From positions 159,619-223,618 of the forward strand of contig NIVC01000209.1 of the NCBI GenBank assembly GCA_002269645.1: DNA of 64,000 nucleotides. Reading direction: 5' to 3'. Every line of letters starts with the position of its first letter. The first letter of the stretch is position 1. This stretch comes from Macrostomum lignano. Lineage: Eukaryota. Position numbers and translations under genes: made by a program. This document shows, piece by piece, positions 68 through 62,293 of this stretch. Below the pieces are notes generated by a model. That model made no database searches. It saw only the letters and a list, made by a program, of their open reading frames with translations, and was not told the DNA's origin.

Positions 68-2467
68 ATGCGGAATCCACTGCCATCACTCTGGCTATCG
101 ATTGCTCTCGCAGCGGTGCTGGGCACATCCGGGGTCCACAGCTACCCCAGCTTCACCTATAGCTACGTTGGCTGCTACACCGACAGCGGGTCTAACAGAG
201 ACATCACTGGCTTAGGCGGAATCTCCCAGCTGGGCAGTTTTCCAGCAAGTCTCTTTTACACTTTTTATGCTGTTTTGTAGACCAATGCTAAGTAAAATGT
301 GGCCCCCTAATCGACTGACAAAAGCACACGATTTTTAGTGCCGGTGCCCAGAAAGAGAAATAAAATGGCGCCCCTCTCAAATGAAATGGCGCCCCTCTCA
401 AATGAAATGGCGCCCCTCTCAAATGAAATGGCGCCCCTCTCAAATGAAATGGCGCCCCTCTCAAATGAAATGGCGCCCCTCTCAAATAAAATGGCGCCCC
501 TCTCAAATGAAATGGCGCCCCTCTCAAATGAAATGGTGCCCCTCTCAAATGACTTGGCAACCCCACTCAAATGAAATGGCGCCCCTCTCAAATGAAATGG
601 TGCCCCTCTCAAATGACTTGGCAACCCCACTCAAATGAAATGGCGCTCCCTACTCAAATGAAATGGCACCCCTTTCAAATTAAATGGCACCCCCTTTCAA
701 ATGAAATGGCGCCCCTCTCAAATGAAATGGCGCCCCCTACTCAAATTAAATGGCGCCCCAAATGATGCCCAAGGACTGTTTAGGAAGTCCTTCAAACGAA
801 ATTGAGTCTTTAAATCAATTAATTAGCATTGACCACTTATGGCTGACTCTCCTCTCTCTCTCGTTCAATGTTATGCATATCCCGAGTAGGTGGACCCTAA
901 CACTGGAGCGCAGTACATCTTTGACAACTCCGCAATGTCGCTGAGCCTGTGCGCTAGCGCCTGCTCGCTGGGCGGCTTTCCTTACTTCGGCGTGCAAGCC
1001 AGCGCTTTCTGCTTTTGCGGCTGGTCCTACGGATCTCTCGGTCAGGTCAGCGACGCGGATTGCAGCGGTTCCGGTCAAACTTGCAGAGGAAATCCGGCTG
1101 AAGTGTGCGGCGGTCTGGATCTGAATGCAGTCTACGCTATGCACTACGGTACGTGTCTAGAGTTGGGGAGTTGCTGAGATGCCAATTGGCTCAATGGGGA
1201 GTTGCTGAGATGCCAATTGGCTCAATGGGGAGTTGCTGAGATGCCAATTGGCTCAATGGGGAGTTGCTGAGATGCCAATTGGCTCAATGGGGAGTTGCTG
1301 AGATGCCAATTGGCTCAATGGGGAGTTGCTGAGATGCCAATTGGCTCAATGGGGAGTTGCTGAGATGCCAATTGGCTCAATGGGGAGTGGCTGAGATGCC
1401 AATTGGCTCAATGGGGGAGTTGCTGAGATGCCAATTGGCTCAATGGGGGGAGTTGCTGAGATGCCAATTGGCTCAATGGGGAGTTGCTGAGATGCCAATT
1501 GGCTCAATGGGGAGTTGCTGAGATGCCAATTGGCTCAATGGGGGGAGTTGCTGAGATGCCAATTGGCTCAATGGGGAGTTGCTGAGATGCCAATTGGCTC
1601 AATGGGGAGTTGCTGAGATGCCAATTGGCTCAATGGGGAGTTGCTGAGATGCCAATTGGCTCAATGGGGAGTTGCTGAGATGCCAATTGGCTCAATGGGG
1701 AGTGGCTGAGATGCCAATTGGCTCAATGGGGAGTTGCTGAGATGCCAATTGGCTCAATGGGGAGTTGCTGAGATGCCAATTGGCTCAATGGGGAGTTGCT
1801 GAGATGCCAATTGGCTCAATGGGGAGTGGCTGAGATGCCAATTGGCTCAATGGGGAGTTGCTGAGATGCCAATTGGCTCAATGGGGAGTTGCTGAGATGC
1901 CAATTGGCTCAATGGGGAGTAGCTAGGATTCCATGGTTATGGGGAGCAGCTAGGATTCCATGGCTCAATGGGGAGTAGCTAGGATTCCATGGCTCAATGG
2001 GGAGTAGCTAGGATTCCATGGCTCAATGGGGAGTAGCTAGGATTCCATGGCTCAATGGGGAGTAGCTAGGATTCCATGGCTCAATGGGGAGTAGCTAGGA
2101 TTCCATGGCTCAATGGGGAGTAGCTAGGATTCCATGGCTCAATGGGGAAGTAGCTAGGATTCCATGGCTCAACTGATTGGAGCTTCCAAAGCCCTTTTTG
2201 TCTCCTGTAGGCAGCGGCTGCAAGACATTTCGGCTGGAGGCCAGCCGACCTCAGCTGGTGGTGACCAGCTCCTACTCGAAGACCACCCACTGGACTGAAC
2301 CCGTCACCGAGGCCGCCAACTGCATTCTGAAGTGCCACTCCTCCGCGAGTAGCAACTGTCAGGCTGTGATTTTCCAGCAGCAGGCCCGGCTGTGCCACCT
2401 TCTGAAGTTCGCTCTGGTGCCGCAGGCTCTGAACACCACTGTTGGAGACTTCTACATCAGAGCCTGA
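68..2467 (+). CDS. Secreted WSC-domain + PAN/Apple-like protein, paralogue 1 (3 exons, 230 aa)
   Basis: Exons 68-244, 890-1148, 2211-2467 join in frame (693 nt). Hydrophobic N-terminus (LWLSIALAAVLG). WSC pattern YVGCYTD..R..MSLSLCASAC..GFPYFGVQ..FCFCG..C..C.G..CGG..NAVY. C-terminal C-x3-C..C.AVIF..Q.RLCHL PAN/Apple-like pattern. Intron 1 donor is GCAAGT. Confidence 0.88.
360..765. repeat. 21-bp minisatellite (AAATGAAATGGCGCCCCTCTC)n in intron 1 of paralogue 1
   Basis: Period of 21 read directly from the sequence; the overlapping ORFs are repeat artefacts. Confidence 0.95.
1164..2172. repeat. 31-bp minisatellite (TGGGGAGTTGCTGAGATGCCAATTGGCTCAA)n changing to a 29-bp variant at about 1920, intron 2 of paralogue 1
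   Basis: Periods of 31 and 29 read directly. Confidence 0.95.
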
Positions 2468-2845
2468 GAGCGGTTCTCTGCTGAAACATCTACTGAAAAT
2501 ATGCAACAGTGAACTGTCTAATTAATTAATACTTTTTGCTGAGGAAAATTAGTTCACTACATGAAAGCCAACCCCTCTGGGAACAAAGACTGTACATGCC
2601 TGATAGTTAGAAAGTCACCCTGTGTGAGTGTGCAGCGCCTGCGTATGTATCTGTGTACATGTTCAGGAGTCGGTGGAACGGCCTTGATTTGTAATTCATA
2701 GCCTTCTGCAAACTAACTGATTGCCTTTAGTACCCAATCCCTATTTCCTTTTCGAATTGCTTACTTTAATTTTACTGATTCATATCGTGTCTTTTCAATT
2801 AGTTTCGTGTTAGCTGCGAATTTTGCAGGATTTCTAAATTTGATG

Positions 2846-3265
2846 CCCATCTGATTGGCTACAGAGTGGAAGGGGTTAGATTCTCCTTGATCGTCATCTG
2901 ATTGGCTAGAGAGTGCAGGAAGGGGTTAGACTCTCCCTGATCGTCATCTGATTGGCTAGAGAGTGGAAGGGGTTAGACTTTCCTTGACCGTCATCTGGTT
3001 GGCTATAGAGTGCAGGAAGTGGTTAGACTCTCCCTGATCGTCATCTGATTGGCTAGAGAGTGCAGGAAGGGGTTAGTCTCTCTTTGATCGTCATCTGATT
3101 GGCTAGAGAGTGGAAGGGGTTAGACTCTCCTTGACCGTCATCTGGTTGGTTAAAGAGAGTGCAGGAAGGGGTTAGACTCTCCTTGACCGTCATCTGGTTG
3201 GTTAAAGAGAGTGCAGGAAGGGGTTAGACTTTGTTTGTCCGTCATCTGGTTGGTTAAAGAGAGTG
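2846..3265. repeat. About 47-50-bp tandem array containing CTGATTGG (inverted CCAAT)
   Basis: Repeated CATCTGATTGGCTAGAGAGTG(CAG)GAAGGGGTTAGACTCTCC units. Confidence 0.9.
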
Positions 3266-4199
3266 TTAGAAAAGTATTTTTGTGTGTTAGATGTGTCGCT
3301 TTTTAAACGCTGAACTTTAACTTTTTCAATTTAAAAAGCGTCATTCTTTTTTGTGAATATTGCCAATAACTCTATAAAAGTACACTGACAAATTTAATTC
3401 CTATAAGCTCGCAGCATCGCAAACTTATTCTCATATACTCTTTTTCAAGACTTTTTTGCCTTCTATGTTTCCCCTGAATGGGCACGAGAGCCTGTAGATG
3501 CTGGCAAATATTTCCCTGGCGCTTCTGCTTTTAGACAGAGACGGGAAGACACTGGCAAAGCATGCGGCTTGCTACTTCTGCAGCGTCTCATCTTCAAGCT
3601 GCAGCCAACCTCACAGCCGTGAGACACTTTAAAAAAGAGTTTAAAAAGCAGATCGTTGCTGCTTGGCTGATTGCCTCACGAGACAACATAATCAGTTTTC
3701 TGCGCAGTAGAACGGCTGGGAAAAGTTTCGTAAGTTTGCCGATATCCTTCCTCCATCCTCCATCATTATACTAAAAATGGTCTGTCGGTAGGTATTAGGT
3801 ATCTACTATCTATCTAGGTAGGTATGCGATCGATTAGAGAAAAACAGCTCAACTGATTTTCATTCGACTTGCAGTGTTCGATCAGAAATTTTCCCGTGAC
3901 GGTACATGTGTCTTGGCTAAGAAATTGCCTAATGCTAAAGGGATTAAATATTCGAAAAAAATCTTTTTTGCAAAGGTCAAGCAAACTTTTCGACTTGAAA
4001 TGTATTGTAAGAATTCTAGAGAATATACCAATATTGATGATGGGCTGCAGAGGCCTCTGCAGAGGCCTCGCGCGTAAAAGAAGCCTCTCGTATAAGCATT
4101 GCTGTGACTTCTTGGGGAGAGTTTTGAAGGCCTACGGTGAATAACTGAGATGTAAAGGCTTACGGAGAGATTTCTTAGATGTCAAGGCAAAAGTCAGAG

Positions 4200-4560
4200 A
4201 GGCCTTTTTTATTAGAGGCAGGGGGTTGTGTGCACCCTGGCGCACTTTAAGCGACATGGGCACACAACCGGCGAGAGGCATTACTGCCCATTCCGCCGAC
4301 TCCCCTGAGCAGGCAAACAAGCGCGCGCATACGTACGCAGGCACACACTCACACAGGAGTGTACAGCGGCCCTAACTTTATTTTATCGTTAGGCATGTAC
4401 ACTTCACTGCGCCTTGGGGGGTTGGCTCTCAAGGCCGTTAATTGCACGAGCAGAGCCAAGCCGAGATTCCAATTCAGCCCCAAATTAATGTGACTGCACT
4501 TGGAATCGAGCCTGGGTCGCTGGCACACCTGAGCAGCTGCGCTACCGCTGGGCTACGGCC
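4200..4560 (-). mobile_element. tRNA-derived SINE (family also seen at 23620-23990, with fragments at about 2590-2690 and 5185-5225)
   Basis: Minus strand begins GGCCGTAGCCCAGCGGTAG (A-box-like) then GGCTCGATTCCA (B-box-like). The body matches the other copies (GGGCCGCTGTAC..CCTGTGTGAGTGTG..GCCTGCGTA). Ends near AATAAAAAA. Confidence 0.65.
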
Positions 4561-5326
4561 CCCCCCCCAAAGTCAGAAAGTCAAAGGCTACATGTAGTTC
4601 ATTTAATTTTTTTACTACATTCCCTTTGGCTCCCCATGGGGGGTGTTGCTGATAGAGAAGAAGCGTCATGTCGAAGTTAACAGATTCATTTGGTGGGAAC
4701 CGCTGCGATGTCAATTAAGGCTTTGAGGGAATCGCTATAATGCTGTAATGCTATAATGACTCTTTGGGAGAATTACTGAAATGTCAATGCTTTAAGGTTA
4801 GGGTTAGGGTTAATGTTCACAGATTTTTTATCATTTGAGATGTCAAGGCTTAATAACAAGGGATTGCTGAGGTTATTGCAATGAGACGCCAGTCGTACAT
4901 ATAAGTTTATTAAAAAACTTGTACTGCATTTTTTACTATATAGTTTTTACTTTGTTTACAGAGGGGAAATGCGAGAGCAAAAGATGAGATGAGGCGTGGA
5001 ATCGGAAAAGAAATGAGGGATAAGGTAAGAGCAGAGATGAGATTAGAGAAGAGAGTTGAGAAGAGAACCTTGAGCGTATGAGATTGTTATTGTAAAGTCC
5101 CAAAGGACCCGAGGGCCGGATAGAGAGGCTTCACGGGCCACATGTGAAGTTGCCGGTCCTTAGTCCCGATGATGTGAAAGTCATGGCCGCTGTGTACACC
5201 CTGTGTGTGCGTGCCTGCTCAATGCTCACTAATGATGGTGCAAACTTAATTTTTACGTTAATTCTAAAATTTTAAACTTGTAAAATCATGCTTGACAGGA
5301 TTATTCTGCAAGGATTCCCAGATCTG

Positions 5327-6630
5327 ATGCTGACTTCCCTACATGTGTCTGCTGCCACCTTGCTGCTGGTAGCCAGTGCTGTTCAGTGCTACTACAGGAG
5401 CTTCAGCTATACATATATTGGCTGCTTCAAGGACAACACGGGAGGCGTCAGGGATATCGTTGGACTGACTGGGATCACCCAGATGGACACTTTCGATGTA
5501 ACTATGAATATCTAGCCTCTAGTAGTTGTAGCCACTAGGAGTTGTAGCCGAGTGGTCAGAGCGTAGGACTCACGACTTGAATGTCGGGAGTTAGATTCCC
5601 GATTCCATTGGAACAATTTGTGTCCTTGAGCAAGACTCCTAACTCTGCATTGATTCAGTTCACCCAGCTGTAAAATGGGTGCCAGCATTAGCTGGGGTAA
5701 TTGAGGCTGTGAGTGGCGACCCCCAGTCCTTGGACTGAACAGCCGTACGCAGCCTTCAGATGCGCCGCGCAATAGCTGCGGCTGAGCTGTCGGTTGCACA
5801 TCTGGCCAATGGGGCAGGTGTAATCAATTGTTATTACTATAAATGTCTACAAAAACAGATTGCATTGATTTTTGTCGTTCAGCTTCAGGCTTTAAACCAG
5901 ATTATTATTATTTATTTTTTCATAGCCGAGTGTCTACCGCTTTTAGGTGTCCCCCGAGCCTGCCAATTCATTTGTGTACAATACAATGGCGCCCAATTTG
6001 TGCGCCAGAATCTGCTCTCTGGGCGGCTTCGCCTATTTCGGTTTGCAAGCCGGAGGCTTCTGCTTCTGCGGCTGGTCCTACGGATCGCAGGGTTCGGCCC
6101 CAGAGTCTGATTGCTCAGAGGCATGCACTGGAAATGCCTCGACCGTCTGCGGTGGTCAAGACCGCAACTCCGTCTACGCAATGCACTACGGTAATAAAAG
6201 TTCATTAAAACGTCATTAAACGGGAATTGCAAGTAGTACTGATCAAGATAATTCGAGTAATCAACGGGAATGGGGTTTGGAGATCCTAGCTGCTCTCATG
6301 AACTTTTAAAATTTGGTTAGCCAACGAACCACTGGGAACTTTGATCTGCTGTTTCTTCCAATTCCAGGCAACAGCTGCAAGAACTTCCACCTGGAGACCA
6401 GCCGACCCCCGCTGAAAGTGGAAGTCGCCACCTTCACCCAAGCCGCCTACTCTGCCGTGGCCGCCACGGAAGCCACCGACTGCATTCTGAAGTGCCACTC
6501 CGCCGGTAGAACCTGCCAGGCTGTGATCTTCAACCAGCAGGCCCGGCTGTGCTACCGGCTGAGGTTCGCTCTGGTGCCGGAGGCTCTGAATGCCACTGCC
6601 GCTGTGGGAGATTTCTACGTGATCGAGTGA
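5327..6630 (+). CDS. Secreted WSC-domain + PAN/Apple-like protein, paralogue 2 (3 exons, 225 aa)
   Basis: Exons 5327-5497, 5947-6190, 6368-6630 join in frame (678 nt) with GT-AG introns at the same positions and phases (0, 1) as paralogue 1. Signal-peptide-like start; WSC and PAN-like cysteine patterns. Confidence 0.9.
5538..5800 (+). mobile_element. tRNA-derived SINE with CORE-like central domain, intron 1 of paralogue 2
   Basis: A box TAGCCGAGTGGT and B-box-like GAGTTAGATTCCC, followed by TGTGTCCTTGAGCAAGACTCCTAAC...TCAGTT...CTGTAAAATGGG, which resembles the recalled MIR/CORE consensus. The 3' boundary is approximate. Confidence 0.7.
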
Positions 6631-7663
6631 GATATGAGTGACCTTTGTTAACAATCTTAATTGGCCACCTATCTGAAATAGCAAGACTGGGTCGTTCTCA
6701 AAGCTAGGTCACAACTTTTTGTTATTGAAAAAAAGTTTGTACACGGACCAACAACAGTACAAAAAATTTATTTTGACAATTTCAGTAAGAAGCTGTTACT
6801 AAAACCACAAAAAACTTAAGTATGACAATAAATGAATCTATTTGTTATTCTAGACAAAATTATTAGACAAAGTTGAATTAATTAATTACTAAAAATCTAC
6901 TAGCTTAACTAAAATAGCAATTAGTCTTTAAGAAAAATTCCACTTGTTAATTGAGAAAAATGAGGTTGTGTGAGATGTACAAATGCAAATGAGCATGCAG
7001 GAAACAGAAACAAACAAAAAAGTTAAATGTGTGAAAATTAATATTTCGCATAAAACGAAAAAAGACACTGCACATGCATATTTAATATGATAAGGAGACA
7101 TAATGAGCACACGCACACTGAAACACCAGTACTAATGGCGAGTCTGCTTCTCGTTGCGAACCCATGCAATAATCAAACTTATGATCGAACTACGCATGGT
7201 TTCTGTCCCTCGCTTTAAATCTCTCACCTCCCCTAGTTCCATCAACCTTAGCAGCTCCTATGCAAAAAGTATCCCTCCGCATCTTATACACGCGTGGCTA
7301 CTTCAGGCTGTAGCCTGACTACACTTTTATAATTGGTTGCACTATTAAGGCATCATATTAAGGCTGCTCAAACAAGGCTGGAGCTTTTCTAGTAATTTCA
7401 GGTTTGTCCATAGACCAAAGCTCGTGATAGGAATTCTATCAACTACATCAAATAATGTATGAACTTATTGTGTGTGTGCTGTGCATATATATGTATATAT
7501 ATAGTCGCACGTCCGACATGTGCTATTTCCAGTAACAAAAATAAATGTTCGGTAAATTGTTAAAATTTTCACTCCTCCCAGAATTTGAGAACGACCCGGC
7601 TACGCAATGAGAAAATACTAAATGCAACATGTCTACTTTCTTTTATTGTATCTAATCTGCGCT

Positions 7664-8040
7664 TATCTGATTGGTCGATAAAGGGGGTGTGGCGGATAGT
7701 TGTGAGGTCAGCTGATTGGCCAGAAAAAGGAGGTGGGGTGGATAGTTGTGAGGTCAGCTGATTGGCCAGAAAAAGGAGGTGGGGAAGAGTTGTGCGGTCA
7801 GCTGATTGGCCAGGAAAAGGGGGTGGGGCGGATAGTTGTGCGGTCAGCTGATTGGCCAGGAAAAGGGGGTGGGGCGGATAGTTGTGCGGTCAGCTGATTG
7901 GCCAGGAAAAGGGGGTGGGGCGGATAGTTGTGCGGTCAGCTGATTGGCCAGGAAAAGGGGGTGGGGCGGATAGTTGTGCGGTCAGCTGATTGGCCAGGAA
8001 AAGGGGTGAGGCGGATTGCTGTGCAGCCATCTGATTAGCT
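7664..8040. repeat. 46-bp tandem array with inverted CCAAT and GC box (GCTGATTGGCCAGGAAAAGGGGGTGGGGCGGATAGTTGTGCGGTCA)n
   Basis: About 8 units read directly. Confidence 0.92.
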
Positions 8041-8572
8041 ATTAAAATTCTTCATACCTTTTTTTTTACCCTGAATAACGACTTAAACTTGAAAAGTGCC
8101 GAATAGCTTTTCCTCTTTTTTTACACGTAGTCTACAGAAAAAATTGAAAGATTTTGTTTGCAGAAATAAATCAATAACTGTTTTTACCTTTAGAACTATC
8201 GCACATAAATCAATAAAATCAATTTTCCGATCAAAAATCAAAATCATGTGGTTTCTTACTTTGTTTTATTTTTTCTCTTGTTTTCCTGTTTTTTCAGCAA
8301 CTGTCTTGTGCAAATATAAAACGCATCATGCCGTTCTTGAAGCCACCGCTGAGCTGCATTCTGATAATTGACAATGACAACACGCATCCACTCTTTGTTA
8401 TTTCCTTCTGACGGCGAATTCGACTGGAGAAAGTTTTTTGCATTTCAAAACTGGCAACTCTGAAAGTAGAATGTCAGATGGCATTCTGCCTGTTTTGTAG
8501 GAGACATTTCCCATGTTCTGAAGAACTGTTATTCTCTTTGAAGTTAATAGGAATCTCTGGCTCCAAGTCCAA

Positions 8573-8575
<3 letters not shown>

Positions 8576-8613
<38 letters not shown>

Positions 8614-8614
8614 C

Positions 8615-8645
<31 letters not shown>

Positions 8646-8658
8646 CACAGACAGACAC

Positions 8659-8689
<31 letters not shown>

Positions 8690-8746
8690 CACAGACAGAC
8701 ACACAGACAGACAGACAGACAGACACACAGACAGACAGACAGACAC

Positions 8747-8840
<94 letters not shown>
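8576..8840. repeat. (GACA)n microsatellite
   Basis: Read directly. Confidence 0.98.
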
Positions 8841-8841
<1 letters not shown>

Positions 8842-9394
8842 TTTAATTGGCATCAGAAATAGCCACCGTGCATTTCCCATTCAGTCTGAAACACACTAAA
8901 GTTGGTCCCAGCAACGCTACTTCTAAGCATTTTAAAAAAACTTGTATAAATGATATGATCCTAAATCGTTTTAATCTAGCACACAACTATCAATATTATA
9001 CTGTAATACTGATCCCGAATAATTAATCCCAAGGACGCAAAGTCCTTATCTTGCCCTGTTTGATGGTTTTTTAAACGCATGAACTAACTTTCATGCTGCT
9101 ACTGAAAGTACTGCATACAGCGCCTGGTTTTTTTTAAACTCCAAGGCTATTTCCAAAAACGTTTACCCTGTACACCTGGGCTGCTACAAAGAAGCGCTCC
9201 CAGCGCCAGCCAGTGCCATTCAACTCATTTAACTTGCCCATTAAAAACTACCAGCATTGTGTTGTTGACCAGGTTATGAATTTGACTGAGGCAAAGGTGC
9301 TGAGGCACACGCATGAGACGCATGACTGGGCAGGTAATGAGCTATCACCCCATTGCCAAGCCTGCTTGAAGGGTCAGGTGCATAACAAACAAAC

Positions 9395-10751
<1,357 letters not shown>

Positions 10752-11365
10752 AAATAACTAAATTTTCAACCCACAAACTCGGCTCTGCTACCTGCTGAAG
10801 TTTTCTCTTGTGCAGCACCGTTGGGGAAGAGTCAATGACGATTGTCCCCAACAACATCCCCAACAACATCTCCAACAACTTTGACTTACTGATTTTGCTG
10901 CAATGTGGTCCGTAGACACCCATTCCGCTAGCCCTGAAGGCCCGCAGACAGGCAGAGGCGTGGGACCCGTCAATGGACGTAGCCATAGAGTTAGCGTAGC
11001 CGGTCTCTGGTAAAGAAAGGGCAGTGACAAACAAAGTGCTGAGCATCTTCATTGTCGTACTCGCAAAAAGGGCAAAGTTCGCTCTCGAGGTCGCCTCGGA
11101 GGAAGCAGTGCCTGGCGAGATAGCCGTGACCGTTAAAGGTCATGACAAGGGCTCAAATATCCTTCCGATTTTGGTTCAGAAGGACGTTTCTGAGCCTGTG
11201 AGAGGGGCACGGATCCGCGGCACGAGATTGCCGGCAGTTCTGGGTTCAGCCCAGTCATCGATCTGACGATTGATGACCCTAGAAAGGATAGTGACCAGGG
11301 GTTCAGGACCAAGGAAAGAGCCAGAGCCGCTCCCCCTGGCGATGGTGTCTGCCAACTCGTTTCCC
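10752..11365 (-). mobile_element. Degenerate 3' fragment of an RNase H-containing non-LTR retrotransposon (I/R1/LOA-like)
   Basis: Minus-strand translation gives the RNase H end GNELADTIARGSGSGSFLGPEP. After a frameshift it reads NCRQSR..LLNQNRKDI*ALVMTFNGHGYLARH..ELCPFCEYDNEDAQHFVCHCPF (CCHC knuckle) with in-frame stops, then a short 3' UTR. Confidence 0.85.
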
Positions 11366-11740
11366 AAAAACATCCCTAGCAGCACCCCCAACAGGATTCC
11401 CAACAGCATCCCCAACAGCATCCCCAACAGCATCCACAACAGCTTCCACAGCAGCATCCCCAACAGCATCCCCAACAGCATCCCCAACAGCATTCCAAAA
11501 GCATCCCCAACAGCATCCCCAACAGCATCCCAACAGCATCCCAAACAGCATCCCCAACAGCATTCCAACAGCATCCCCAACAGCATTCCAACAGCATCCC
11601 CAACAGCATTCCAACAGCATCCCCAACAGCATTCCAACAGCATCCCCAACAGCATTCCAACAGCATCCCCAACAGCATCCCCAACAGCATCCCCAACAGA
11701 ATCCCAACAGCATCCCCAACAGCATTCCAACAGCATCCCC
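11365..11740. repeat. 12-bp minisatellite (CAACAGCATCCC)n
   Basis: Read directly; the GMLL/PNSI ORFs are artefacts. Confidence 0.95.
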
Positions 11741-11865
11741 GATATGTTTACTATAGTTTGTAGCGGCTCGCCTTCGGCCTGGCGAGCGAAAAGAAAGTTC
11801 GCTTGCCAAGCCTCAAGTTGCGGCCTGGCTTCTCAACTTGAGCGTCTACTTGGGCCATAGACGTA

Positions 11866-13155
11866 CGAGAGGAAGTCAAAAAGTAATGATAATTTTGTTC
11901 TCACGAAGTGTCAAACTTCAAATGGGAATCTACTCTTCTACATGGTACCCCTTCAGGGTCAGGCACTTCTTCATTCAGTGTTGCGGCTGTTGCCATCTCT
12001 CCAGGCCGTTCGCGTAGAACTCAGGAGGCTGTGCAGCAAGCCACTGTACAGTAGCCACTGGACTCCTTTGATTGCTTCCTTCAGCTTGGGAAACAAAAAA
12101 GTCCGGAGGAGCCAAACCAGGGCTATATGGAGGATGCTAGAGGATTTCCAGGCGGAAATCTTGCAGGGCTTCACGGCAGAGCCGAGAAGTGTGGGCTGGT
12201 GCATCGTCGTGGTGAAAGAGAATCCCACAGTGCAGCTTGTCGGGTCGCTTTTTGGCCAGTTCGGTGCGGAGCTAGCTTTCGCAGAAGCGACTCATATCAG
12301 GTGGCACTGATGGTCTTCTGGCTTTCCAAGAAGTCGACCGTCACCACTCCCTAAACATCCCAGAAGATGGTCGCCAAGACCTTCGCTGCAGACCGTTCTG
12401 CACAGAACTTCTTGAGGCCCGCAGAACCTCGTGGCAGCCCCTCCTTGGATTGGACTTTGGATTCGGGATTGTACTGAAATATCCATGTTTCATCCCCAGT
12501 CACTGAGCGCTGGTAAAAGTTTTCTGAATCAGCCTCCAAGCGGTTCAGCAGGTTGATGGCGCACTCAGTGCGCTGAACCCGGTGTTCAGGCCGCAACAGC
12601 CGCGGGACCCAGCGGGCACTCAGCTTGCTCAGACCAAGACAGTCCGTCACAATGGAGTGAGCACTGCCATGAGAGATGGCCACTTGGTCAGCAATATTGT
12701 CTATGGTCACGCACCGATCCTGCTCAAGTACCTGCTGCACAGCTGCCACATTTTTCTCTGTGCGCGATGTTTTGGGCCTTCCAGACTGCTGGGCGTCTTC
12801 CACGGACTCTCGGCCTTTCTTGAAAGCCTGAATCCAGCGGTAAATGATTGGATCTGGTGGAGCAGTGGTCCCCGTAGACCTTCTTCAAAGCGTCAATGAT
12901 TTCGGCTGGCTTCCAACCAAGTTTTACAAGAAAATTCACGTTAGTGCGAGCTTCGATTTTTTAATTTTCCATTGCTCAAAGGGTATACTGTGATTAGAGC
13001 GTCACCATGCAGACATCAATCACTTTAGAAGAACAAAAACTCTGTAAAATAAAGAGCCAAAGATGTTTTTTTTCAAATGAAACCAGTTGCAGTTCACTAC
13101 CTCTTATATTTTAGGCGTTACAACAAAATTATCATTACTTTTTGACTTCCCCTCG
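11866..13155 (-). mobile_element. Full-length mariner transposon (irritans/Hsmar2-like) with a disrupted transposase at 11930-12972
   Basis: 34-bp TIRs at 11866-11899 and 13122-13155 with one mismatch; TA on both flanks; 1290 bp long. Transposase motifs KIEARTNVNFLVKLGWK, WVPRLL, TGDETW, HHDDAPAH, HPPYSPGLAPPDF, GYHVEE*, broken by stops and frameshifts. Confidence 0.96.
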
Positions 13156-14171
13156 TATATGATAATGGCAATTTAATAAGCATTCTATGGTCAGAGTGTC
13201 CGAGGCTGCATTTAATGGTCCCGAGGCGAGCGAAGCGAGTGTGGCCAAGGACATTCTAACCATAGACAGCTTAATTTAATGGCTATTATTTTATAATAAA
13301 TCAGATTGCTTATTTTGGGCCGTATGCAGAAAGCCTAGTCCAGACTAGCTTGTCCGGACTGGCTAGTTCAGTCTATGGTCTATGGTATAGCTAGAATTGT
13401 GGAAGTGTAGCTCGTCTAACAAATAGTAGGAAAATAAACGTCAACAAAAACATAAAAAGTCCAACAGAAGACGTCAAACACAAGACGTCGTCAGGGCAAA
13501 TTCAATCAACCTAAGATCACACCACCAATATATTTAAGCAAAAATCACTGTACAGTCCAGAGGCGGGTCAAAACAGTCCGGTAGAATTTAGAAAATGCCA
13601 AGTACATAACAACGTGAGAGAGAAAAAAAAATAATAAAAAAATAGGCACGGCTCTGCTCACAGTACTCTTAGCTCACGCTTGCTTGGCTTAGCTTGGCCA
13701 AAAAAACTGTAAGGCGTCATGTTGCTACTGAAATAACTGCTTACAGCGTTAGATTATTTTAAACCCCATGCTTGTTTCCAAAAAAAACTTACCATTGCCC
13801 ATCGAAAAACTGCCGGCATTGTGGTGCCAGCCAGTGAATTTTTATCATTCATTTTAGTCATATTGTTGCTATGGCGACGCTGCTCAGCGCTGATGACGGC
13901 TGAGGCACACGCGTGAGATCCGTGCGCGGAAGGGCACTGAGCTAACACCCCCATTGCCAAACCTGCTGCTTGATGGGTCAGCTGCTTCTTTCTCTCTCTC
14001 CCTATGCACACGCCTGTGCATGCAGATTAGATTCATATAGAAGCAGCATAGAAGAAGTCAGCCATTGTTATAAATTTAAATCGTTTTTTTAGCAATTTTA
14101 CGCTGCAATTTAATCCCCCCAGCTCTACTATGTGCGCAGAGGCTTTCGCTTACTAGAAAAAGTGTCCGAAA

Positions 14172-17100
14172 ATGCTTGCTGTGAGTCTTGTCGCAGTTCT
14201 TGGCGCAGCCTTCGCGCTGGGCGACACATCCTACTCTTATTCTAACCTGGGCTGCTTTATTGACGATGACGACCGGGACCTCCTCGGCCTGGTTGGCATC
14301 ACCACGATGGGAGAGTACAGCGTAAGTTTATTTATTGTCATTACCTGGATTAATCTGAGGCACCAGATAATCAGGAGCTGCCATATCCGCCGCCCTCCCA
14401 GATCCAGGGTTCCCACCGCCGCTGCTCTTCCCAGATCCTTAGTTGCTGGGTTCCCACCGCCGCTGCTCTTCCCAGATCCTCAGTTGCTGGGTTTCCACCG
14501 CCGCTGCTCTTCCCAGATCCTCAGTTGCTGGGTTCCCACCGCCGCTGCTCTTCCCAGATCCTCAGTTGCTGGGTTCCCACCGCCGCTGCTCTTCCCAGAT
14601 CCTCAGTTGCTGGGTTCCCACCGCCGCTGCTCTTCCCAGATCCTCAGTTGCTGGGTTCCCACCGCCGCTGCTCTTCCCAGCTCCTCAGTTGCTGGGTTCC
14701 CACCGCCGCTGCTCTTCCCAGATCCTCAGTTGCTGGGTTCCCACCGCCGCCTTCCCAGATCCTCAGTTGCTGGGCCACCACCCTCTCATAGTTTGTCTTC
14801 CATTCTCCCAGAACAACCACTGCAGTAGCAAATACTAGCAAGAGGAGCGATAAACAGCCACTGCCCCGCACCACACAAGAGCGCTGATGAGCATCCCTAG
14901 CTTATAATTTGATGGTCGTAGAACGTATAAAAACCAAATTACTAATAAGAAACAAGAAAATATTAGCATTTATCAATTGGAGTTATCATATAAGTTATCA
15001 TTAGAGTTGTAATTAGAGATTATTAGGAGTTATCATTAGGAGTTATCATTAGGAGTTATCATTAGATTTATCATTAGGAGCTACCATTAGAGTTATCATT
15101 AGGAGTCATCATTAGAGTTATCATTAGGAGTTACCATTAGAGTTATCATTAGGAGTTACCATTAGGAGTTATCATTAGGAGTCATCATTAGGAGTTACCA
15201 TTAGAGTTATCATTAGGAGTTATCATTAGGAGTTATCATTAGAGTTATCATTAGCAGTCATCATTAAAGTTATCATTAGGAGTCATCATTAGGAGTTACC
15301 ATTAGAGTTATCATTAGGAGTTACCATTAGGAGTCATCATTAGAGTTATCATTAGGAGTTACCATTAGAGTTATCATTAGGAGTTACCATTAGGAGTTAT
15401 CATTAGGAGTTATCATTAGGAGTTACCATTAGAGTTATCATTAGGAGTTACCATTAGGAGTTATCATTAGGAGTTATCATTAGGAGTTACCATTAGAGTT
15501 ATCATTAGGAGTTACCATTAGGAGTCATCATTAGAGTTATCATTAGGAGTTACCATTAGAGTTATCATTAGGAGTTACCATTAGGAGTTATCATTAGGAG
15601 TTATCATTAGGAGTTACCATTAGAGGTATCATTAGGAGTTACCATTAGGAGTTATCATTAGGAGTTACCATTAGAGTTATCATTAGGAGTTACCATTAGG
15701 AGTTATCATTAGGAGTTATCATTAGGAGTCATCATTAGGAGTTACCATTAGGAGTTACCATTAGGAGTTATCATTAGGAGTTATCATTAGGAGTCATCAT
15801 TAGGAGTTACCATTAGAGTTATCATTAGGAGTTACCATTAGGAGTCATCATTAGCAGTCATAATTAAAGGTATCATTAGGAGTCATCATCACGAGTCAAT
15901 AAGAATCACCGCACTTATGTTACATCATGCTAATGATGTAACCGCCCTTGTCGCCTGTCCGCTCCGTAGAGAGACGAACGCATGACCGGAGGGGGCAATG
16001 ACCGTAGGCTGCCTATGACCGGGCAATGACCTGACGGACCTCCAGCACCAGACTGTCCCGCCCACATGATTGATAGCTTTGGTAGCGCTTCGTGACCAGA
16101 GGGCCAAGGACCCACATGGACCCCACCTGTAGCCAAGGTGCAATAGTTGGTCACTCGGTCATAGTATGACCGAATGGCTGCCACCACTCTATGTGACCCG
16201 GCGCACCTAGATCTTACTACCAGACCTCTCGAGGCTAGAGCCCCGCCTGGGATGGTTACCAGGAGATATAGGCTAACAGGGGAGACACATGCAGCCGAGT
16301 ACAGGGACTCTGCTTGAGGCATGATCGGGAACTCTGGGCTCAATCTGGAGGATTTCTCAGCAGGGGATCCTTTGTGGCTGTGAGCGAGGCGGACTTGCGA
16401 CTTTGATTACTAAGAGTAGTATGAGGCGAACATGTGCTGTCTATAGTTTAGATTTCTCAGGGCAAAGGGACGCGTCAGCATGGGGTTGCAACCTTCCTAC
16501 TGCCATTCTGTGCCAAGACTCGCTAATTCCTCTACTGCACGCACACACGGCCCCGCAGCACGCACTCACAGGAGGCCATTAGCTTACCCAAACTTCCTTA
16601 TGCTTTGCCACCCCGAGAGAAAGGCTTAGCAAGCCATGAGTTAAATGATGGTGGAAGAGTGAATAATGATGAGGTTAGTTAATAGTTAATAATTAGGCCC
16701 TTAGGCAAATAATCAGGCAAGTAGGCGGCTTCACTATTGAGTAAAAGTACAGCAAAAGTTACGGTATCACAATTGGCTCAGCTCTCTAATCAAGTAATGG
16801 CAAAAATAGGCAAACCCCGGATAAGCAAAGGCGATTAGAGCACAAATTAGTAATAGGAACTTACCGGCAGCTGCACAGAAAGAGAGAGCGGCAGAGTGAC
16901 CGAGGGCGGCTGTAGGCTGCAGTCAGGCAGACAGTGAAGCGGCGATGCGCTGAAGCGACGAGGCGCTGATGTAGATCAGGCGATGCTGATGATGCTGGGC
17001 GGTATCAGACCGCTGGCCGATAGGCGAGCTCACTTGGGAGCTAAGGTAACTGGGCGGTATCAGACCGTGGACCGGCAGAGGCTCGTCCTACAGACGAATA

Positions 17101-19464
17101 GGTCAGAGCTACGTCTGACGGCAAGTCCAAAGAAGGACGGGGAGACGCACAGTCTGAGGAGACCGGAACCCCGAGAGTTGAGGATTCTCATGCCGAAAAC
17201 CGCCTCCTTATATAGACACCCCAGCCGCCGCTCCAAGGTCGTTTCCGTGACTCCCTCTCTCTGATTGGCTGCCGGCAGAATGACGTCAGAATGAGTCAGG
17301 ATGAGAAGTATGAGAACGGCATAGCAATATGAGAAATGGGAGAATTGCGCAATCCGGAGGTGGGGTGGGGGATAATTGGCGCAGCGGGAGGTCGCGAAAG
17401 TGTTGCGCAAGCAAACATTGAGAACAATGGGGCGGGGGTCCAGAACAAAGGAATTGGAAATCGGGGATAATTGGGGAGAACCGAGAACAATAGAAAAGCA
17501 AACATTGGGGAAAAGGTGATAATTAGGTGCGAAAATGAGAACAATAGAAAGAGAAAATCGGAGAAAATGTGATAATTGGTGGGGATAAAGAGAACAAAAG
17601 AATAAAAAACGAGAACAATAGAAGCGGAGGTGGGGTGGGTGTCGCATGAGAAATTTTGGGAGAAGAACAATAGTATGAGAAAAGTTTGCGCAAGAGAGGG
17701 GGATGAGTCATCGATGAATCATCGAGGGGAAGGAGGGGTCACACGACTTGCGTCACCGTTTGGGAGTTTGAGAAGGGAAGGGGTGACGGTGAGCGCATAA
17801 AATACTGTAAGTAGACGCAGAGAAAGGGGGGCAGCGCAGGAAACTAGTGCAGAAAGAGACAAAAAAGAGGAGAGACAGGGAAAGTACACGAAGAATAGGG
17901 CGGAAAGCAGAAGAGATAGGGTGGAGGGGGAGGCACAGAGAGGGGTAGGGAGTGTTTAGGAGATGGCTTACATGTACTTTTCATTCACCTGCGCGTAACT
18001 TTCATATCAGAGATTTTGGTATACGTACGTTTCAGCCCCAGCCACCATTATAATGTTCAGCCGCACCCACTCTATTTATTTAAAATTATTGCAATATATA
18101 GTTATCAATCAAAGCATTCTGGTTTTTGTTCGTTTGGCTAGTAGCCGAAAAATAGTCGCTTACTGCGAAGACTCAATTTATTGCATGAACCATCAAAACA
18201 GGGAGCTCCGGAAAGGCAAGTGTGGCGGCAGGGGAGACGGAGCCAAGGCAGCAGGGGGTGCAGCAGAGCGGGAGTCTCCAGGCCTGGTCGAAGACCTGGC
18301 CGAGTCTCAACAGCTCTGTGTAGGGGGTGCACGGCGATAGGAGGCACTTTCGAAAAAGTTCACCTGCCCTATCCCGCGACCAGAGCGTGGTTACATCACT
18401 AATTGGATTTCTGCCCCCAATGGAATAATCAGCCGCTAGGAGATATGAAATCGTTTTTTAGATTTACAACCCTCTTCTAATTATACAGAAAGCTAGTAGT
18501 ATGTCATGCACATAGCATTTTAAAATATGTTTCTAAATTTACATTTCTTCTTTAACTAAATTGCATTGCTACTTACGACTATTTTCTTCACTAAATTGCA
18601 GCCGAACAACCTATGGGCTATAAGCAGCACCGCAATGACTCCAGACTACTGCGCCAAAGTGTGCTCTCTCGGCGGCTTCCCATACTTCGGAGTGCAGTAT
18701 TATAGTTTTTGTTTCTGCAGCCGGTCCTACGGATCCCATGGACAGGCTGTGGACGAACAATGCAACACACCGTGCAAAGGCAATGCTTCGATTAACTGCG
18801 GTGGAACGTGGCGCAACTCGGTCTTCGCTATGCGCTACGGCTCCAGTGAGATCAAGTTGTTTTCTAAGAAATTACCTCAGTATAATTTGAATTGGAATTC
18901 ATTCATTATCGATAGTTGATTAAGGAATTTGAACCGATTGAAAATAAAAATTATCGATTAATCGTTGAGACATTCTACAACCTAGCATTCACGTCCTGCA
19001 ATCCAACATCCACGCCCTGCAATCCAACATCCACGCCCTGCAATCCAACATCCACATCCTGCAATCCAACATCCACATCCTGCAATCAAACATCCACATC
19101 CTGTAATCCAACATCCACGTCCTGCAATGCAACATCCACGCCCTGCAATCCAACATCCACCTCCCCAAATCAATGTGGCATGTTCATTGCTCGTCCATCT
19201 TCCGCAGACAACGGCTGCCGCTCGTCGTACCACCCGAACCCGAGCCGACCCCAGCTGGAGGTGAGCAGCTCCTACTCGAAGGCCACCTACTGGACGGAAG
19301 CCATTCCAAATATCGCCGGCTGCATTCAAAGATGCAGCACCGCCGCTAGCAGCTGCCTGGCGGTGCTTTTCAACCGACAGGCCCGGCTCTGCCACCTGCT
19401 GAAGTTCGCTCTGGTGCCGCAGGCTCTGAGCACCGTCGATGGAGAGTTCTATGCTCGTGGATAA
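14172..19464 (+). CDS. Secreted WSC-domain + PAN/Apple-like protein, paralogue 3 (3 exons, 216 aa)
   Basis: Exons 14172-14321, 18602-18845, 19208-19464 join in frame (651 nt) with GT-AG introns of phase 0 and 1. Signal peptide MLAVSLVAVLGAAFALG; WSC (LGCFID..R..MTPDYCAKVC..CGGTWRNSVF) and PAN-like domain. Confidence 0.88.
14390..14775. repeat. 41-bp minisatellite in intron 1 of paralogue 3
   Basis: Period of 41 read directly (CCGCCGCTGCTCTTCCCAGATCCTCAGTTGCTGGGTTCCCA). Confidence 0.93.
14990..15890. repeat. 12/13-bp minisatellite (ATTAG(G)AGTTA(T/C)C)n
   Basis: Read directly. Confidence 0.95.
17207..17298 (-). promoter_or_regulatory. Pol II promoter-like motif cluster, antisense to the host gene
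   Basis: On the minus strand: TATATAAG (17207-17214), CCAAT (17264-17268) about 50 bp upstream of it, CRE TGACGTCA (17281-17288) and AP-1 TGAGTCA (17292-17298). Confidence 0.4.
18990..19165. repeat. 21-bp minisatellite (CTGCAATCCAACATCCACGCC)n in intron 2 of paralogue 3
   Basis: Read directly; open and in frame with exon 3. Confidence 0.92.
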
Positions 19465-20218
19465 AATCCTTTGTATTCTCGTTGTAAATTAGGATTAATT
19501 TTCGTTCACTTTGATCGGTTTGACAGCTGTCTGCGATGTTCTGGCTCTCTGGAGACTCTGACAGTAAAGTTGTTTTTTAACGATTGAACAAATCAGAAGT
19601 AATCAATTTGCTTTTCCTGAGAGCTTTAAAAATTCTACGTACGGACGTTAGGACTCTCATAAAATACTCTTGACTAACATGTTAAAAATATTCTTGCAAT
19701 ATCCTTGATCCTTTGAAATTTAAGTAAATATAAGAGAGTTATATAGCTAGCCAATCTGCATCCTGGTCCCCCTCTGCGAACCATCCAATTTCTGCTGCGC
19801 TTGTTCTTTAGAGGTGATTGATACAACAAAAAATTATAAGACAAGTTTTTTACTGTATATCGATCAAGAATGAAGCGATGGACCTTTTTATGACCCTCTC
19901 GACAAAGAAAATGCTACTGCTTATCATTTCATGATCTATCGATATGATTGATATGGCATGCTTCTACTGACACTGGTTCAAAGCAAGCAAATACAACCAG
20001 CAATTACAGTGTTTGAAGTGTCTGCAGCCTAGCGCGTGACCCAACCAAATTACAAGTACAATGCAGCCTACAACGAAACCTGTCGATTTGTTATCCATAA
20101 CATTTCTAGATGCTAAAGCAAGATAATGTTTGTCGCAACATAAACTTTCGGTGTAGATATAGAACCGAAACACATCTTGAGGCCTCGACCGGTTAGCTTT
20201 CAATATCTTGTAGCCAAA

Positions 20219-23200: not shown

Positions 23201-23271
23201 TTTTCGGAGACGTTCAACGGCTGGCCTTTCGACAGGTTCGACTAATGTTCGAGGCCGATTTTTGCGGTTAG
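20219..23271 (+). CDS. Secreted fibrinogen-related protein (C-terminal FBG/FReD domain; 4 exons, about 583 aa)
   Basis: Exons 20219-20724, 21090-21587 (acceptor could instead be 21099), 21717-22033, 22841-23271 join in frame. Signal-peptide-like start. FBG motifs VLQRIRGSVSFQRNWTEYENGFG..FWIGLEAVH, FSTLDRDND, GGWWFSSC. AATAAA at 23310. Confidence 0.88.

Positions 23272-38212: not shown

Positions 38213-62293
<24,081 letters not shown>

Follow-up and report, generated by a model that had tools for sequence, protein, structure and literature searches.

A Macrostomum-restricted, locally duplicating family of predicted secreted proteins with WSC and PAN-type domains, putative glycan-binding lectins

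What do the small genes at the beginning of this stretch of Macrostomum DNA encode, and do they represent a distinct family of extracellular binding proteins? Within the window (the whole 64-kb stretch analysed), we found three intact paralogues on the + strand within 19.4 kb: g1 (230 amino acids), g2 (225 or 238 amino acids) and g3 (216 amino acids); no further family copies were found in the window. A preliminary description of this DNA proposed three diverged tandem genes sharing a three-exon plan, and the spliced models confirm that proposal. Each gene has three exons, separated by a phase 0 intron and a phase 1 intron, as follows.

68..244, + strand: g1 exon 1; start codon, signal peptide (about residues 1–25) and start of the WSC domain (YVGCYTD...); phase 0
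890..1148, + strand: g1 exon 2; remainder of the WSC domain with seven of its eight cysteines; acceptor tag/GTG, donor ACG/gtacgt; next intron phase 1
2211..2467, + strand: g1 exon 3; PAN-type C-terminal module and stop codon (PAN_1 E 6e-4)
5288..5497 (likelier start 5327), + strand: g2 exon 1; signal peptide and start of the WSC domain
5947..6190, + strand: g2 exon 2; WSC domain (50.7 bits)
6368..6630, + strand: g2 exon 3; PAN-type module and stop codon (PAN_1 E 2e-3; family profile)
14172..14321, + strand: g3 exon 1; signal peptide (about residues 1–17) and start of the WSC domain; donor AGC/gtaagt, phase 0
18602..18845, + strand: g3 exon 2; WSC domain (54.8 bits)
19208..19464, + strand: g3 exon 3; PAN-type module and stop codon (PAN_1 21.9 bits)

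All splice sites follow the GT-AG rule except in intron 1 of g1, for which a GC donor (cca/gcaagt, with gcaagt at 245) was accepted because it is the sole in-frame solution that preserves homology with g2 and g3. Translation of g2 likely begins at the second ATG (5327), which yields 225 amino acids, rather than at the first (5288), which yields 238; the M. lignano orthologue begins at the equivalent MLTCLHV and has no upstream in-frame ATG. Exon 2 of g3 has two possible donors, a GT at 18846 (216 amino acids) and a GC located 6 nt upstream at 18840 (214 amino acids). The longer form is supported by the colinear M. lignano orthologue P0001 (76% identity), which reads "...RYGSDNGC...". The first intron of g3 is 4.3 kb long and repeat-rich, and minisatellites occur throughout the cluster. 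A Fibrinogen_C gene lies downstream of g3 on the + strand (~20.2–23.3 kb), where the preliminary description had placed a fibrinogen-domain neighbor; apart from adjacency, nothing connects it to g1–g3.

The three paralogues share 45–54% identity, and tblastn comparisons between their exons give E-values of 1e-15 to 1e-27, far beyond chance. Values of omega between paralogues range from 0.41 to 0.50, and comparison of g2 with its M. lignano orthologue gives dN 0.114, dS 0.225 and omega 0.51. Selection on the family is thus purifying but relaxed, and evolution is fast (omega ~0.5). The paralogues, for which a dN/dS analysis had been suggested, are tandem and diverging, as originally described.

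Exons 1 and 2 encode the WSC domain, and exon 3 corresponds exactly to the C-terminal module. The Pfam WSC profile (PF01822; curated gathering cut-off 27.8 bits) matches g1 at 44.9 bits (residues 59–134), g2 at 50.7 bits and g3 at 54.8 bits, all above the cut-off, as do the matches in 18 of 18 family members. The domain contains eight cysteines, which in g1 are C36, C80, C84, C100, C102, C117, C124 and C132 and have equivalents in g2 and g3.

Several lines of evidence bear on the identity of the C-terminal module. The Pfam PAN_1 profile (PF00024; curated gathering cut-off 21.4 bits) scores 20.0, 18.3 and 21.9 bits in g1, g2 and g3, respectively, such that g3 alone passes; the same region is matched in 16 of the 18 family members (best E 1.4e-5). 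When the family profile was compared with PDB sequences, all 21 matches fell in PAN/apple-containing proteins, including the SML-2 lectin (E 6.6e-4), the N domain of HGF, MIC4 and a Colletotrichum copper oxidase. An AlphaFold2 model of g1 exon 3 (pLDDT 85.1, pTM 0.77) adopts a beta-beta-alpha-beta-beta-beta (E-E-H-E-E-E) arrangement. Every structure at Foldseek ranks 1 to approximately 41 for this model contains a PAN/apple domain; TMq reaches 0.59 and the probability 1.0, and the best E is a modest 9e-3. Judged by profile and predicted fold, the exon-3 module is a PAN-type domain, built around an invariant four-cysteine core (C183, C187, C195 and C207). A strict Apple domain of the factor XI/prekallikrein type was rejected, since the third disulfide, which joins the N- and C-termini of true apple domains, is missing and no cysteine lies C-terminal to C207. 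An additional cysteine at the N-terminal start of exon 3 (C149) is unpaired within the module and missing in several M. lignano members. The model of the full-length protein is poor (pLDDT 47.7), and the mutual placement of the WSC and PAN-type domains is unreadable from it.

The N-termini of g1–g3 carry a hydrophobic leader followed by a plausible cleavage site with small residues at positions -3 and -1, as judged heuristically. Scanning 19-residue Kyte-Doolittle windows past residue 30 revealed no transmembrane segment or GPI-type hydrophobic tail in g1–g3; the maxima were 1.18–1.28, with no mean above 1.3. The proteins stop 20–25 residues past the last PAN cysteine, and Pfam matches are limited to WSC and PAN_1. 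By these heuristics, the g1–g3 products are predicted to be soluble secreted proteins, and the architecture originally described, a signal peptide plus one WSC and one PAN/Apple-like module with no anchor, is upheld.

How widely is this architecture distributed? We sought full-length relatives in two multi-billion-protein searches. Matches to single queries (15 of 15) and family matches in the profile search (27 of 27) were all from M. lignano, as were all listed representatives with the C-terminal module behind the WSC domain among the best 150 of 10,052 matches; more weakly matching proteins of other phyla that carry both domains may rank below those 150. Among detectable relatives so far, these searches indicate a large family restricted to Macrostomum, in agreement with the earlier suggestion that it is lineage-specific. 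With full-length relatives from M. lignano alone and a dS of 0.23 to the g2 orthologue, the window was taken to derive from a congener of that species. The pairing of the two domain types is not unique to the family: a PAN_4-containing protein also combines WSC with PAN, as do fungal copper radical oxidases matched in the PDB. No functional study of this WSC + PAN family was found in the literature, but databases already include M. lignano members automatically annotated as "WSC domain-containing protein" and, in one case, "Apple domain-containing protein."

The M. lignano WSC proteins A0A1I8G2U8 (P0001), BOX15_Mlig027391g1 (P0002) and BOX15_Mlig016881g1 (P0008) belong to this same family and resemble g1–g3 in length, cysteine pattern, three-exon plan and clustering. 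The corrected Mlig027391 product is 78% identical to g2, and its gene shares the three-exon plan and intron phases; no counterpart of g1 above 60% identity was present among the proteins found. A metagenome contig exhibits the same phase-1 boundary between WSC and PAN. In M. lignano, locus L002 contains two genes 3 kb apart, and L003 contains at least five family segments within 20 kb. Truncation or frameshifts affect some M. lignano models (P0160, P0173). A sister clade of g1–g3, typified by P0003–P0006, shares 37–44% identity with g1, and some of its members are without the extra cysteine.

This sister clade supplies the sole expression annotation that we traced for the family. It corresponds to orthogroup OG0000005, which includes Mlig012529.g1 (P0006), Mlig011376.g1 (P0003) and Mlig003596.g1 (P0005), and which is annotated Testis and germline_FACS in Tables S1 and S5 of Brand et al. 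2020 (PMC7336406); no tail, prostate, ovary or social-sensitivity label accompanies it there. Such labels apply to the orthogroup as a whole and, as described in that source, are assigned when at least one member bears each annotation and none conflicts (PMC7336406). The g2 orthologue Mlig027391 is not among the 92 entries of OG0000005 in that material. From this one published annotation of the sister clade, by analogy, a reproductive setting, for example as a sperm-associated or spermatogenic lectin, appears more likely for the family than a mucosal or immune one.

Taken together, the data describe a real, lineage-restricted, uncharacterized and lectin-like family built from known domains. 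We favor, with a probability of roughly 55%, a reading in which this Macrostomum-restricted, locally duplicating family of secreted WSC + PAN proteins comprises putative glycan-binding soluble lectins, more likely acting in a reproductive setting. A WSC domain and a PAN-type domain would be carried on one small secreted protein (~22 kDa when mature), and these two different binding domains would recognize or cross-link extracellular glycans. The conserved thirteenth cysteine, which lies unpaired where exon 3 begins, could permit disulfide-linked dimers. A soluble-lectin mechanism seems most likely because both domain types bind glycans in tested cases. Both domain types can also engage in protein-protein contacts, as in the WSC domain of KREMEN and the apple domains of factor XI, and we therefore use the term lectin for g1–g3 by analogy. 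It is tempting to speculate further that the proteins are germline- or sperm-associated Macrostomum lectins with fast turnover whose targets would be glycans on sperm or in the female antrum of the mating partner and which would take part in sperm anchoring, storage or post-copulatory sexual conflict, with exon-3 gene conversion and covalent dimers formed through the unpaired cysteine shaping specificity; we consider this elaborated scenario doubtful.

The secreted architecture with two lectin-type domains would also suit pattern-recognition or mucus lectins of the epidermis or gut, whose ligands would be either glycans of microbes or algae (beta-1,3-glucan, for example), in defense, or mucus, in adhesion. 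An expanded, clustered and fast-evolving family is typical of immune lectins, and the storage glucan of diatoms is beta-1,3-linked. A fungal WSC lectin binds beta-1,3-glucan, and worms are fed diatoms according to the methods portion of PMC7336406. The fibrinogen-domain neighbor points in the same direction, but adjacency is no proof of co-function, and the sole annotation of family members is to the testis region and germline rather than to any non-reproductive tissue. We regard this defense or adhesion role as possible, though on balance unlikely.

Less probable still is that g1–g3 encode seminal-fluid proteins, produced by the prostate glands and passed to the partner during mating. Among the M. 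lignano transcripts that are tail-limited and socially sensitive, many encode WSC proteins and some are fibrinogen-related (Weber 2018 Table S1), Mlig-pro46 and others exhibit WSCD2 homology (PMC6953679), and an omega of ~0.5 is in keeping with seminal-fluid proteins. However, among the 18 RNAi-tested candidates with published ids and primers to which our comparison extended (18 of the 76 candidates Mlig-pro1–76 of Weber et al. 2018), gene ids match none of the five family ids compared, and primers match nothing in the family loci L001–L003. In addition, OG0000005 bears no Tail or social-sensitivity label, and prostate transcript RNA815_80.4 is reported to contain two WSC domains, unlike the family architecture. 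The least probable alternative, which we consider very remote, is that g1–g3 are duplicates that have lost their function or are losing it, and that they serve no purpose today. The truncated and frameshifted models, the minisatellite-riddled cluster and the OG0000005 member Mlig000498.g4, which has almost no reads in a positional dataset and is classed as "Non-Specific," are compatible with decay, but all three ORFs are intact, the 12 core cysteines and splice sites are conserved, omega is 0.4–0.5 and hence below 1, and the g2 orthologue has been retained across a dS of 0.23.

Macrostomum serves as a model in studies of sexual selection, regeneration and bioadhesion, and its genome contains several large lineage-specific expansions of WSC-domain genes whose biochemistry is uncharacterized. 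What is new here is a clean family definition: a signal peptide, a WSC domain and a PAN domain that is encoded by exon 3, in clustered, fast-evolving genes. This definition offers a tractable entry point. The proteins are small, soluble and easily expressed, and M. lignano is amenable to RNA interference, in situ hybridization and transgenesis. Should they prove to be reproductive lectins, they would qualify as candidates for recognition between sperm and the female tract in a hermaphrodite; should they be immune or gut lectins, they would constitute a flatworm-specific pattern-recognition family. Neither reading would overturn what is currently understood, and both domains are well known.

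Several known systems can be compared with the family. The Mlig-pro proteins (Mlig-pro4, 5, 11, 46, 49, 63 and others) are likewise secreted, WSC-bearing and from Macrostomum; these candidates are tail-limited and socially sensitive, whereas the family clade that we traced is annotated testis/germline. WSC3 of Serendipita indica was shown experimentally to bind long beta-1,3-glucans (PMC7816849). Like g1–g3, WSC3 is secreted; it consists solely of WSC-type binding modules and differs in being fungal, having three WSC domains and lacking PAN. The C-terminal module is matched best, in profile and fold, by two apicomplexan apple-domain lectins, SML-2 of Sarcocystis muris and MIC4 of Toxoplasma, and by the N-terminal PAN domains of HGF and plasminogen; all of these proteins lack a WSC domain and share only 15–21% sequence identity with the g1–g3 module. 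SML-2 and MIC4 bind galactose. PDB titles indicate that SML-2 was crystallized with thio-galactose and that the N domain of HGF binds heparin. The copper radical alcohol/aryl-alcohol oxidases of Colletotrichum graminicola (PDB 6RYV/6RYW/6RYX/6STX) are also secreted and combine PAN_1 and WSC as non-catalytic modules, and their PAN part was matched by both the family profile and the g1 exon-3 model. These fungal modules sit on a large catalytic domain, and their sequences are not close to those of g1–g3. Identity with such an AA5_2 fungal PAN-WSC copper radical oxidase was rejected, since g1–g3 have no catalytic domain (Pfam detects WSC and PAN_1 only). The order of modules is also reversed: the fungal oxidases carry PAN followed by WSC at their N-termini, whereas in g1–g3 the WSC domain precedes PAN.

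Reading of nucleotides 1-2600, 5200-6750, 14050-14500, and 18400-19700 of the window, with exons spliced by hand, yielded models for three paralogous genes designated g1, g2, and g3.

Exons of the three family genes in the window
68-244, 890-1148, 2211-2467; + strand; g1, 230 amino acids
5288-5497, 5947-6190, 6368-6630; + strand; g2, 238 amino acids from the first ATG, 225 from the ATG at 5327
14172-14321, 18602-18845, 19208-19464; + strand; g3, 216 amino acids

The spliced coding sequences (216-238 amino acids) agree with the preliminary description of three diverged tandem genes with a shared three-exon plan; intron 1 is in phase 0 and intron 2 in phase 1 in all three. Splice sites are GT-AG throughout with the sole exception of the first donor of g1. 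Intron 1 of g1 (245-889) is GC-AG with a strong donor context (cca/gcaagt), and it offers no GT donor that preserves both the reading frame and homology with g2 and g3. The 225-amino acid form of g2 appears more likely than the 238-amino acid form because the M. lignano orthologue of g2 starts at the residue matching the second ATG and has no upstream in-frame ATG. The g3 junction is the single uncertain boundary; a GC donor 6 nt upstream is also in phase and would generate a protein of 214 amino acids. Comparison with the M. lignano orthologue of g3 (P0001, A0A1I8G2U8; 76% identity), which is colinear across the junction '...RYGS(D/N)NGC...', supports the 216-amino acid model. The three paralogues share 45-54% identity, their exons recover one another in tblastn searches with E values of 1e-15 to 1e-27, and no fourth family copy was found elsewhere in the 64-kb window.

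The Pfam WSC profile scores 44.9-54.8 bits in g1-g3 against a curated cut-off of 27.8, so that all three pass. All three begin with a hydrophobic leader in which small residues occupy positions -3 and -1 (VHS/Y, VQC/Y, and ALG/D). Beyond the leader, the Kyte-Doolittle mean of every 19-residue window stays at or below 1.3, and the chains have polar C-termini. By virtue of these features, the proteins look soluble and secreted, as judged by a hydropathy heuristic rather than SignalP. Thus, both the WSC domain and the lack of a transmembrane segment noted previously were recovered in 3/3 proteins. Each mature protein contains 13 cysteines: eight in the WSC domain, a four-cysteine core in exon 3 (C-x3-C-x6-8-C-x11-C), and one extra. 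The extra one lies where exon 3 begins (C149 of g1, at about 2219-2221 in the window, with counterparts in g2 and g3); it has no partner within the C-terminal module and is missing from several M. lignano members. This residue could form an intermolecular disulfide that yields covalent dimers.

The preliminary description had listed a C-terminal module that does not fold as PAN/Apple among the results that would refute it, and we tested the identity of this module in four ways. Pfam PAN_1 scores 18.3-21.9 bits in g1-g3 against a cut-off of 21.4, and g3 alone formally passes; the same region matches PAN_1 in 16 of 18 family members scanned singly (best E value 1.4e-5). When all PDB sequences were searched at a permissive threshold with a profile built from 18 C-terminal modules, 21 sequences were retrieved, all of which (21/21) contain a PAN/apple domain. 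They include the Sarcocystis lectin SML-2 (E value 6.6e-4), the N domain of HGF, Toxoplasma MIC4, and a Colletotrichum copper oxidase. AlphaFold2 prediction of the g1 module alone with the 18-module alignment gave a pLDDT of 85.1 and a pTM of 0.77, with elements in the order strand-strand-helix-strand-strand-strand. A full-length model (17-sequence alignment) was unusable at a pLDDT of 47.7, and the exon 3 module was predicted alone instead. A Foldseek search of the PDB with the g1 module model returned only PAN/apple-containing structures to about rank 41, among them HGF NK1/NK2, SML-2, plasminogen, MIC4, leech antiplatelet protein, and a fungal oxidase; query-normalised TM scores reached 0.59 and probabilities 1.0, with modest E values (best 9e-3). 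One M. lignano member is named "Apple domain-containing" in UniProt. Exon 3 corresponds to the PAN module, and the phase-1 intron lies exactly at the WSC/PAN boundary. Sequence profiles and the predicted fold together identify the module as a PAN domain of the two-disulfide type rather than a strict factor XI-type apple domain, because no C-terminal cysteine pairs with the first cysteine of the module. The PAN-type assignment of the earlier description therefore stands, in a form that lacks the third disulfide of strict apple domains.

Clustering is a property of the family, because M. lignano members are clustered as well. On one scaffold, 3 kb separate P0008 (BOX15_Mlig016881g1) from P0003, and a 20.7-kb locus around P0006 contains five or more family segments, distributed over both strands. 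The locus of the g2 orthologue (P0002) harbors a single copy within 10 kb on each side, with an exon plan identical to that of g2. At positions 9449-10627 of that locus (L001, NIVC01000025.1), the annotated model BOX15_Mlig027391g1 (177 amino acids) lacks exon 1; the full product has 223 amino acids with a signal peptide, and the gene sits inside the span of an 805-amino acid gene model on the opposite strand.

Minisatellite and microsatellite DNA makes up about one third of the intron and spacer sequence in the window cluster. Examples are a 31-mer repeated 32 times in g1 intron 2, TAAC repeated 345 times in the g2-g3 spacer, and a 13-mer repeated 73 times in g3 intron 1. Unequal exchange within the cluster could be favoured by these repeats. 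Between g2 and g3, two overlapping ORFs on the - strand (12351-12939) resemble, by eye, the N-terminal part of a mariner-type transposase. They have no Pfam match at an E value of 1e-3 and probably represent a decayed element. The fibrinogen-domain gene reported to adjoin the cluster was located on the + strand, and the remaining domains identified belong to unrelated genes.

Repeat arrays and other genes of the window
358-759, 1164-2148, 2848-3261, 7680-8036, 8573-8841; repeat arrays in cluster introns and spacers
9383-10761, 11363-11740, 14407-14774, 14962-15896, 18986-19164; repeat arrays in cluster introns and spacers
about 20177-23271; + strand; Fibrinogen_C gene (two exons scoring 79.4 and 32.8 bits; an exon near 20.2 kb may encode a signal peptide)
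41503-41925; - strand; Tudor-like/DUF4537 exon, unrelated gene
51243-54411; + strand; FKBP_C and TPR protein, unrelated gene
56369-56902; - strand; VWA_3-domain exon, unrelated gene

Searched with a full-length profile, a set of 1.84 billion cluster representatives produced 10,052 hits, of which the best 150 (at least about 164 bits) were listed; these are mostly multi-WSC proteins. Rescanning the 150 with an HMM limited to the C-terminal module revealed that, beyond the proteins used to build the profile, the module is present in P0040, P0051, P0052, P0080, P0084, P0109, P0135, P0017, and P0019 only. P0160 covers most of the family profile with a disrupted C-terminal module. Wherever a source is named, these listed representatives (P0160 included) come from M. 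lignano; P0017 carries only a UniParc number, which falls within their range. A word-indexed search with the family alignment retrieved 27 family members, 27/27 from M. lignano, and at lower scores WSC-only proteins of fungi and metagenomes. The C-terminal module alone as query added solely a 69-amino acid fragment on two short metagenome contigs (ENA ERZ27309172 and ERZ28655790; 600-630 nt), which encode a family member with the phase-1 WSC/PAN intron. One contig contains the end of the WSC exon, the phase-1 intron, and the PAN exon, a gene structure like that of g1-g3. The fragment presumably derives from another macrostomid and represents flatworm DNA within environmental assemblies.

In public data, and within the best 150 of 10,052 representatives, the WSC + PAN family appears confined to a single flatworm genus; weakly matching two-domain relatives from other phyla may score below those 150. 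This distribution bears out the proposed lineage specificity, in that every member with a source name, among the matches listed and in the 27-member search, is from M. lignano. The M. lignano protein P0019 (1074 amino acids) appears to be a model in which several tandem copies, all with a signal-peptide-like stretch of their own, are fused, and P0017 (2673 amino acids) is probably a similar fusion; both point to tandem arrays longer than the loci retrieved here. Horizontal transfer from fungi was considered since the best WSC matches are often fungal; it was rejected in view of spliceosomal introns whose positions are shared between species and of the occurrence of WSC domains in other animal proteins (Crassostrea matches).

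Nei-Gojobori estimates revealed that g2 and its M. lignano orthologue (78% identity) differ with a dN of 0.114, a dS of 0.225, and an omega of 0.51; pairwise values among g1-g3 are 0.82-0.95 for dS and 0.41-0.50 for omega. The copies are thus diverging, as had been described, under purifying selection that is relaxed or mixed with positive selection, pairwise omega being unable to demonstrate the latter. Values of about 0.4-0.5 are common in reproductive and immune proteins. The PAN exons (2211-2467, 6368-6630, and 19208-19464) have a dS far below that of the WSC exons (for g1-g2, 0.40 in exon 3 versus 1.34 in the WSC part), and an identical residue is encoded by the identical codon in 12-15 of 14-16 cases. 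This pattern suggests gene conversion among PAN exons or constraint at the nucleotide level.

Both domain types bind glycans in cases tested elsewhere. For WSC, the example is Serendipita indica WSC3, which binds long beta-1,3-glucans (PMC7816849). For PAN, PDB titles record crystals of SML-2 with thio-galactose and of the HGF N domain with heparin; SML-2 is the protein that the PAN module matches best in sequence. By this analogy, the family members would be putative soluble lectins whose two unlike binding domains recognise extracellular glycans or connect them, and the unpaired cysteine might join the proteins as covalent dimers.

Among the settings in which such lectins might act, we rank a reproductive role in testis or germline first because of an orthogroup annotation and the evolutionary pattern. 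Table S1 of Brand et al. 2020 (PMC7336406) places Mlig012529.g1, Mlig011376.g1, and Mlig003596.g1 (P0006, P0003, and P0005) in OG0000005, an orthogroup that unites 92 sequences of M. lignano, M. spirale, and M. hystrix. Table S5 of that study resolves its label "Non-Specific|Other|Testes" to "Testis" and adds "germline_FACS"; tail, ovary, social, and in situ annotations are absent. Under the authors' rule, this annotation stands for one or more testis-region-biased members and one or more germline-biased members, with no member in conflict. One member, Mlig000498.g4, is Non-Specific with very low reads and almost unexpressed (PMC7336406). The label hints at a reproductive setting at the level of the orthogroup, which holds M. 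lignano paralogues of g1-g3. Immune, mucosal, or food-glycan lectins, the kind of role proposed in the preliminary description, rank second. Prostate seminal-fluid proteins rank third. A seminal-fluid role was worth testing because WSC domains recur among prostate and tail-limited transcripts: resemblance to WSCD2 has been noted for the prostate seminal-fluid candidate Mlig-pro46 "and several other" candidates (Patlar et al. 2019, PMC6953679), one prostate transcript has two WSC domains (Arbore et al. 2015, PMC4490696), and many tail-limited, socially sensitive M. lignano transcripts encode WSC-domain proteins and a few fibrinogen-related ones (Weber et al. 2018, PMC5977470, Table S1). However, the gene ids of the 18 RNAi-tested candidates, the ones with published primers, include none of the five family gene ids compared, and their primers have no match in the retrieved family loci. 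Non-functional copies are placed fourth.

The genes are real, with the architecture first described, and nothing about them contradicts current understanding. Our literature search found no functional study of the family, in keeping with its description as uncharacterised, and family gene ids had no match in the main texts of a full-text search. Already known are both domains, their co-occurrence in fungi, and M. lignano members, which have database entries and appear in a published orthogroup table. WSC occurs beside PAN in P0147, which combines two WSC domains with a PAN_4 domain, and PAN and WSC modules are also found together in fungal copper radical oxidases.
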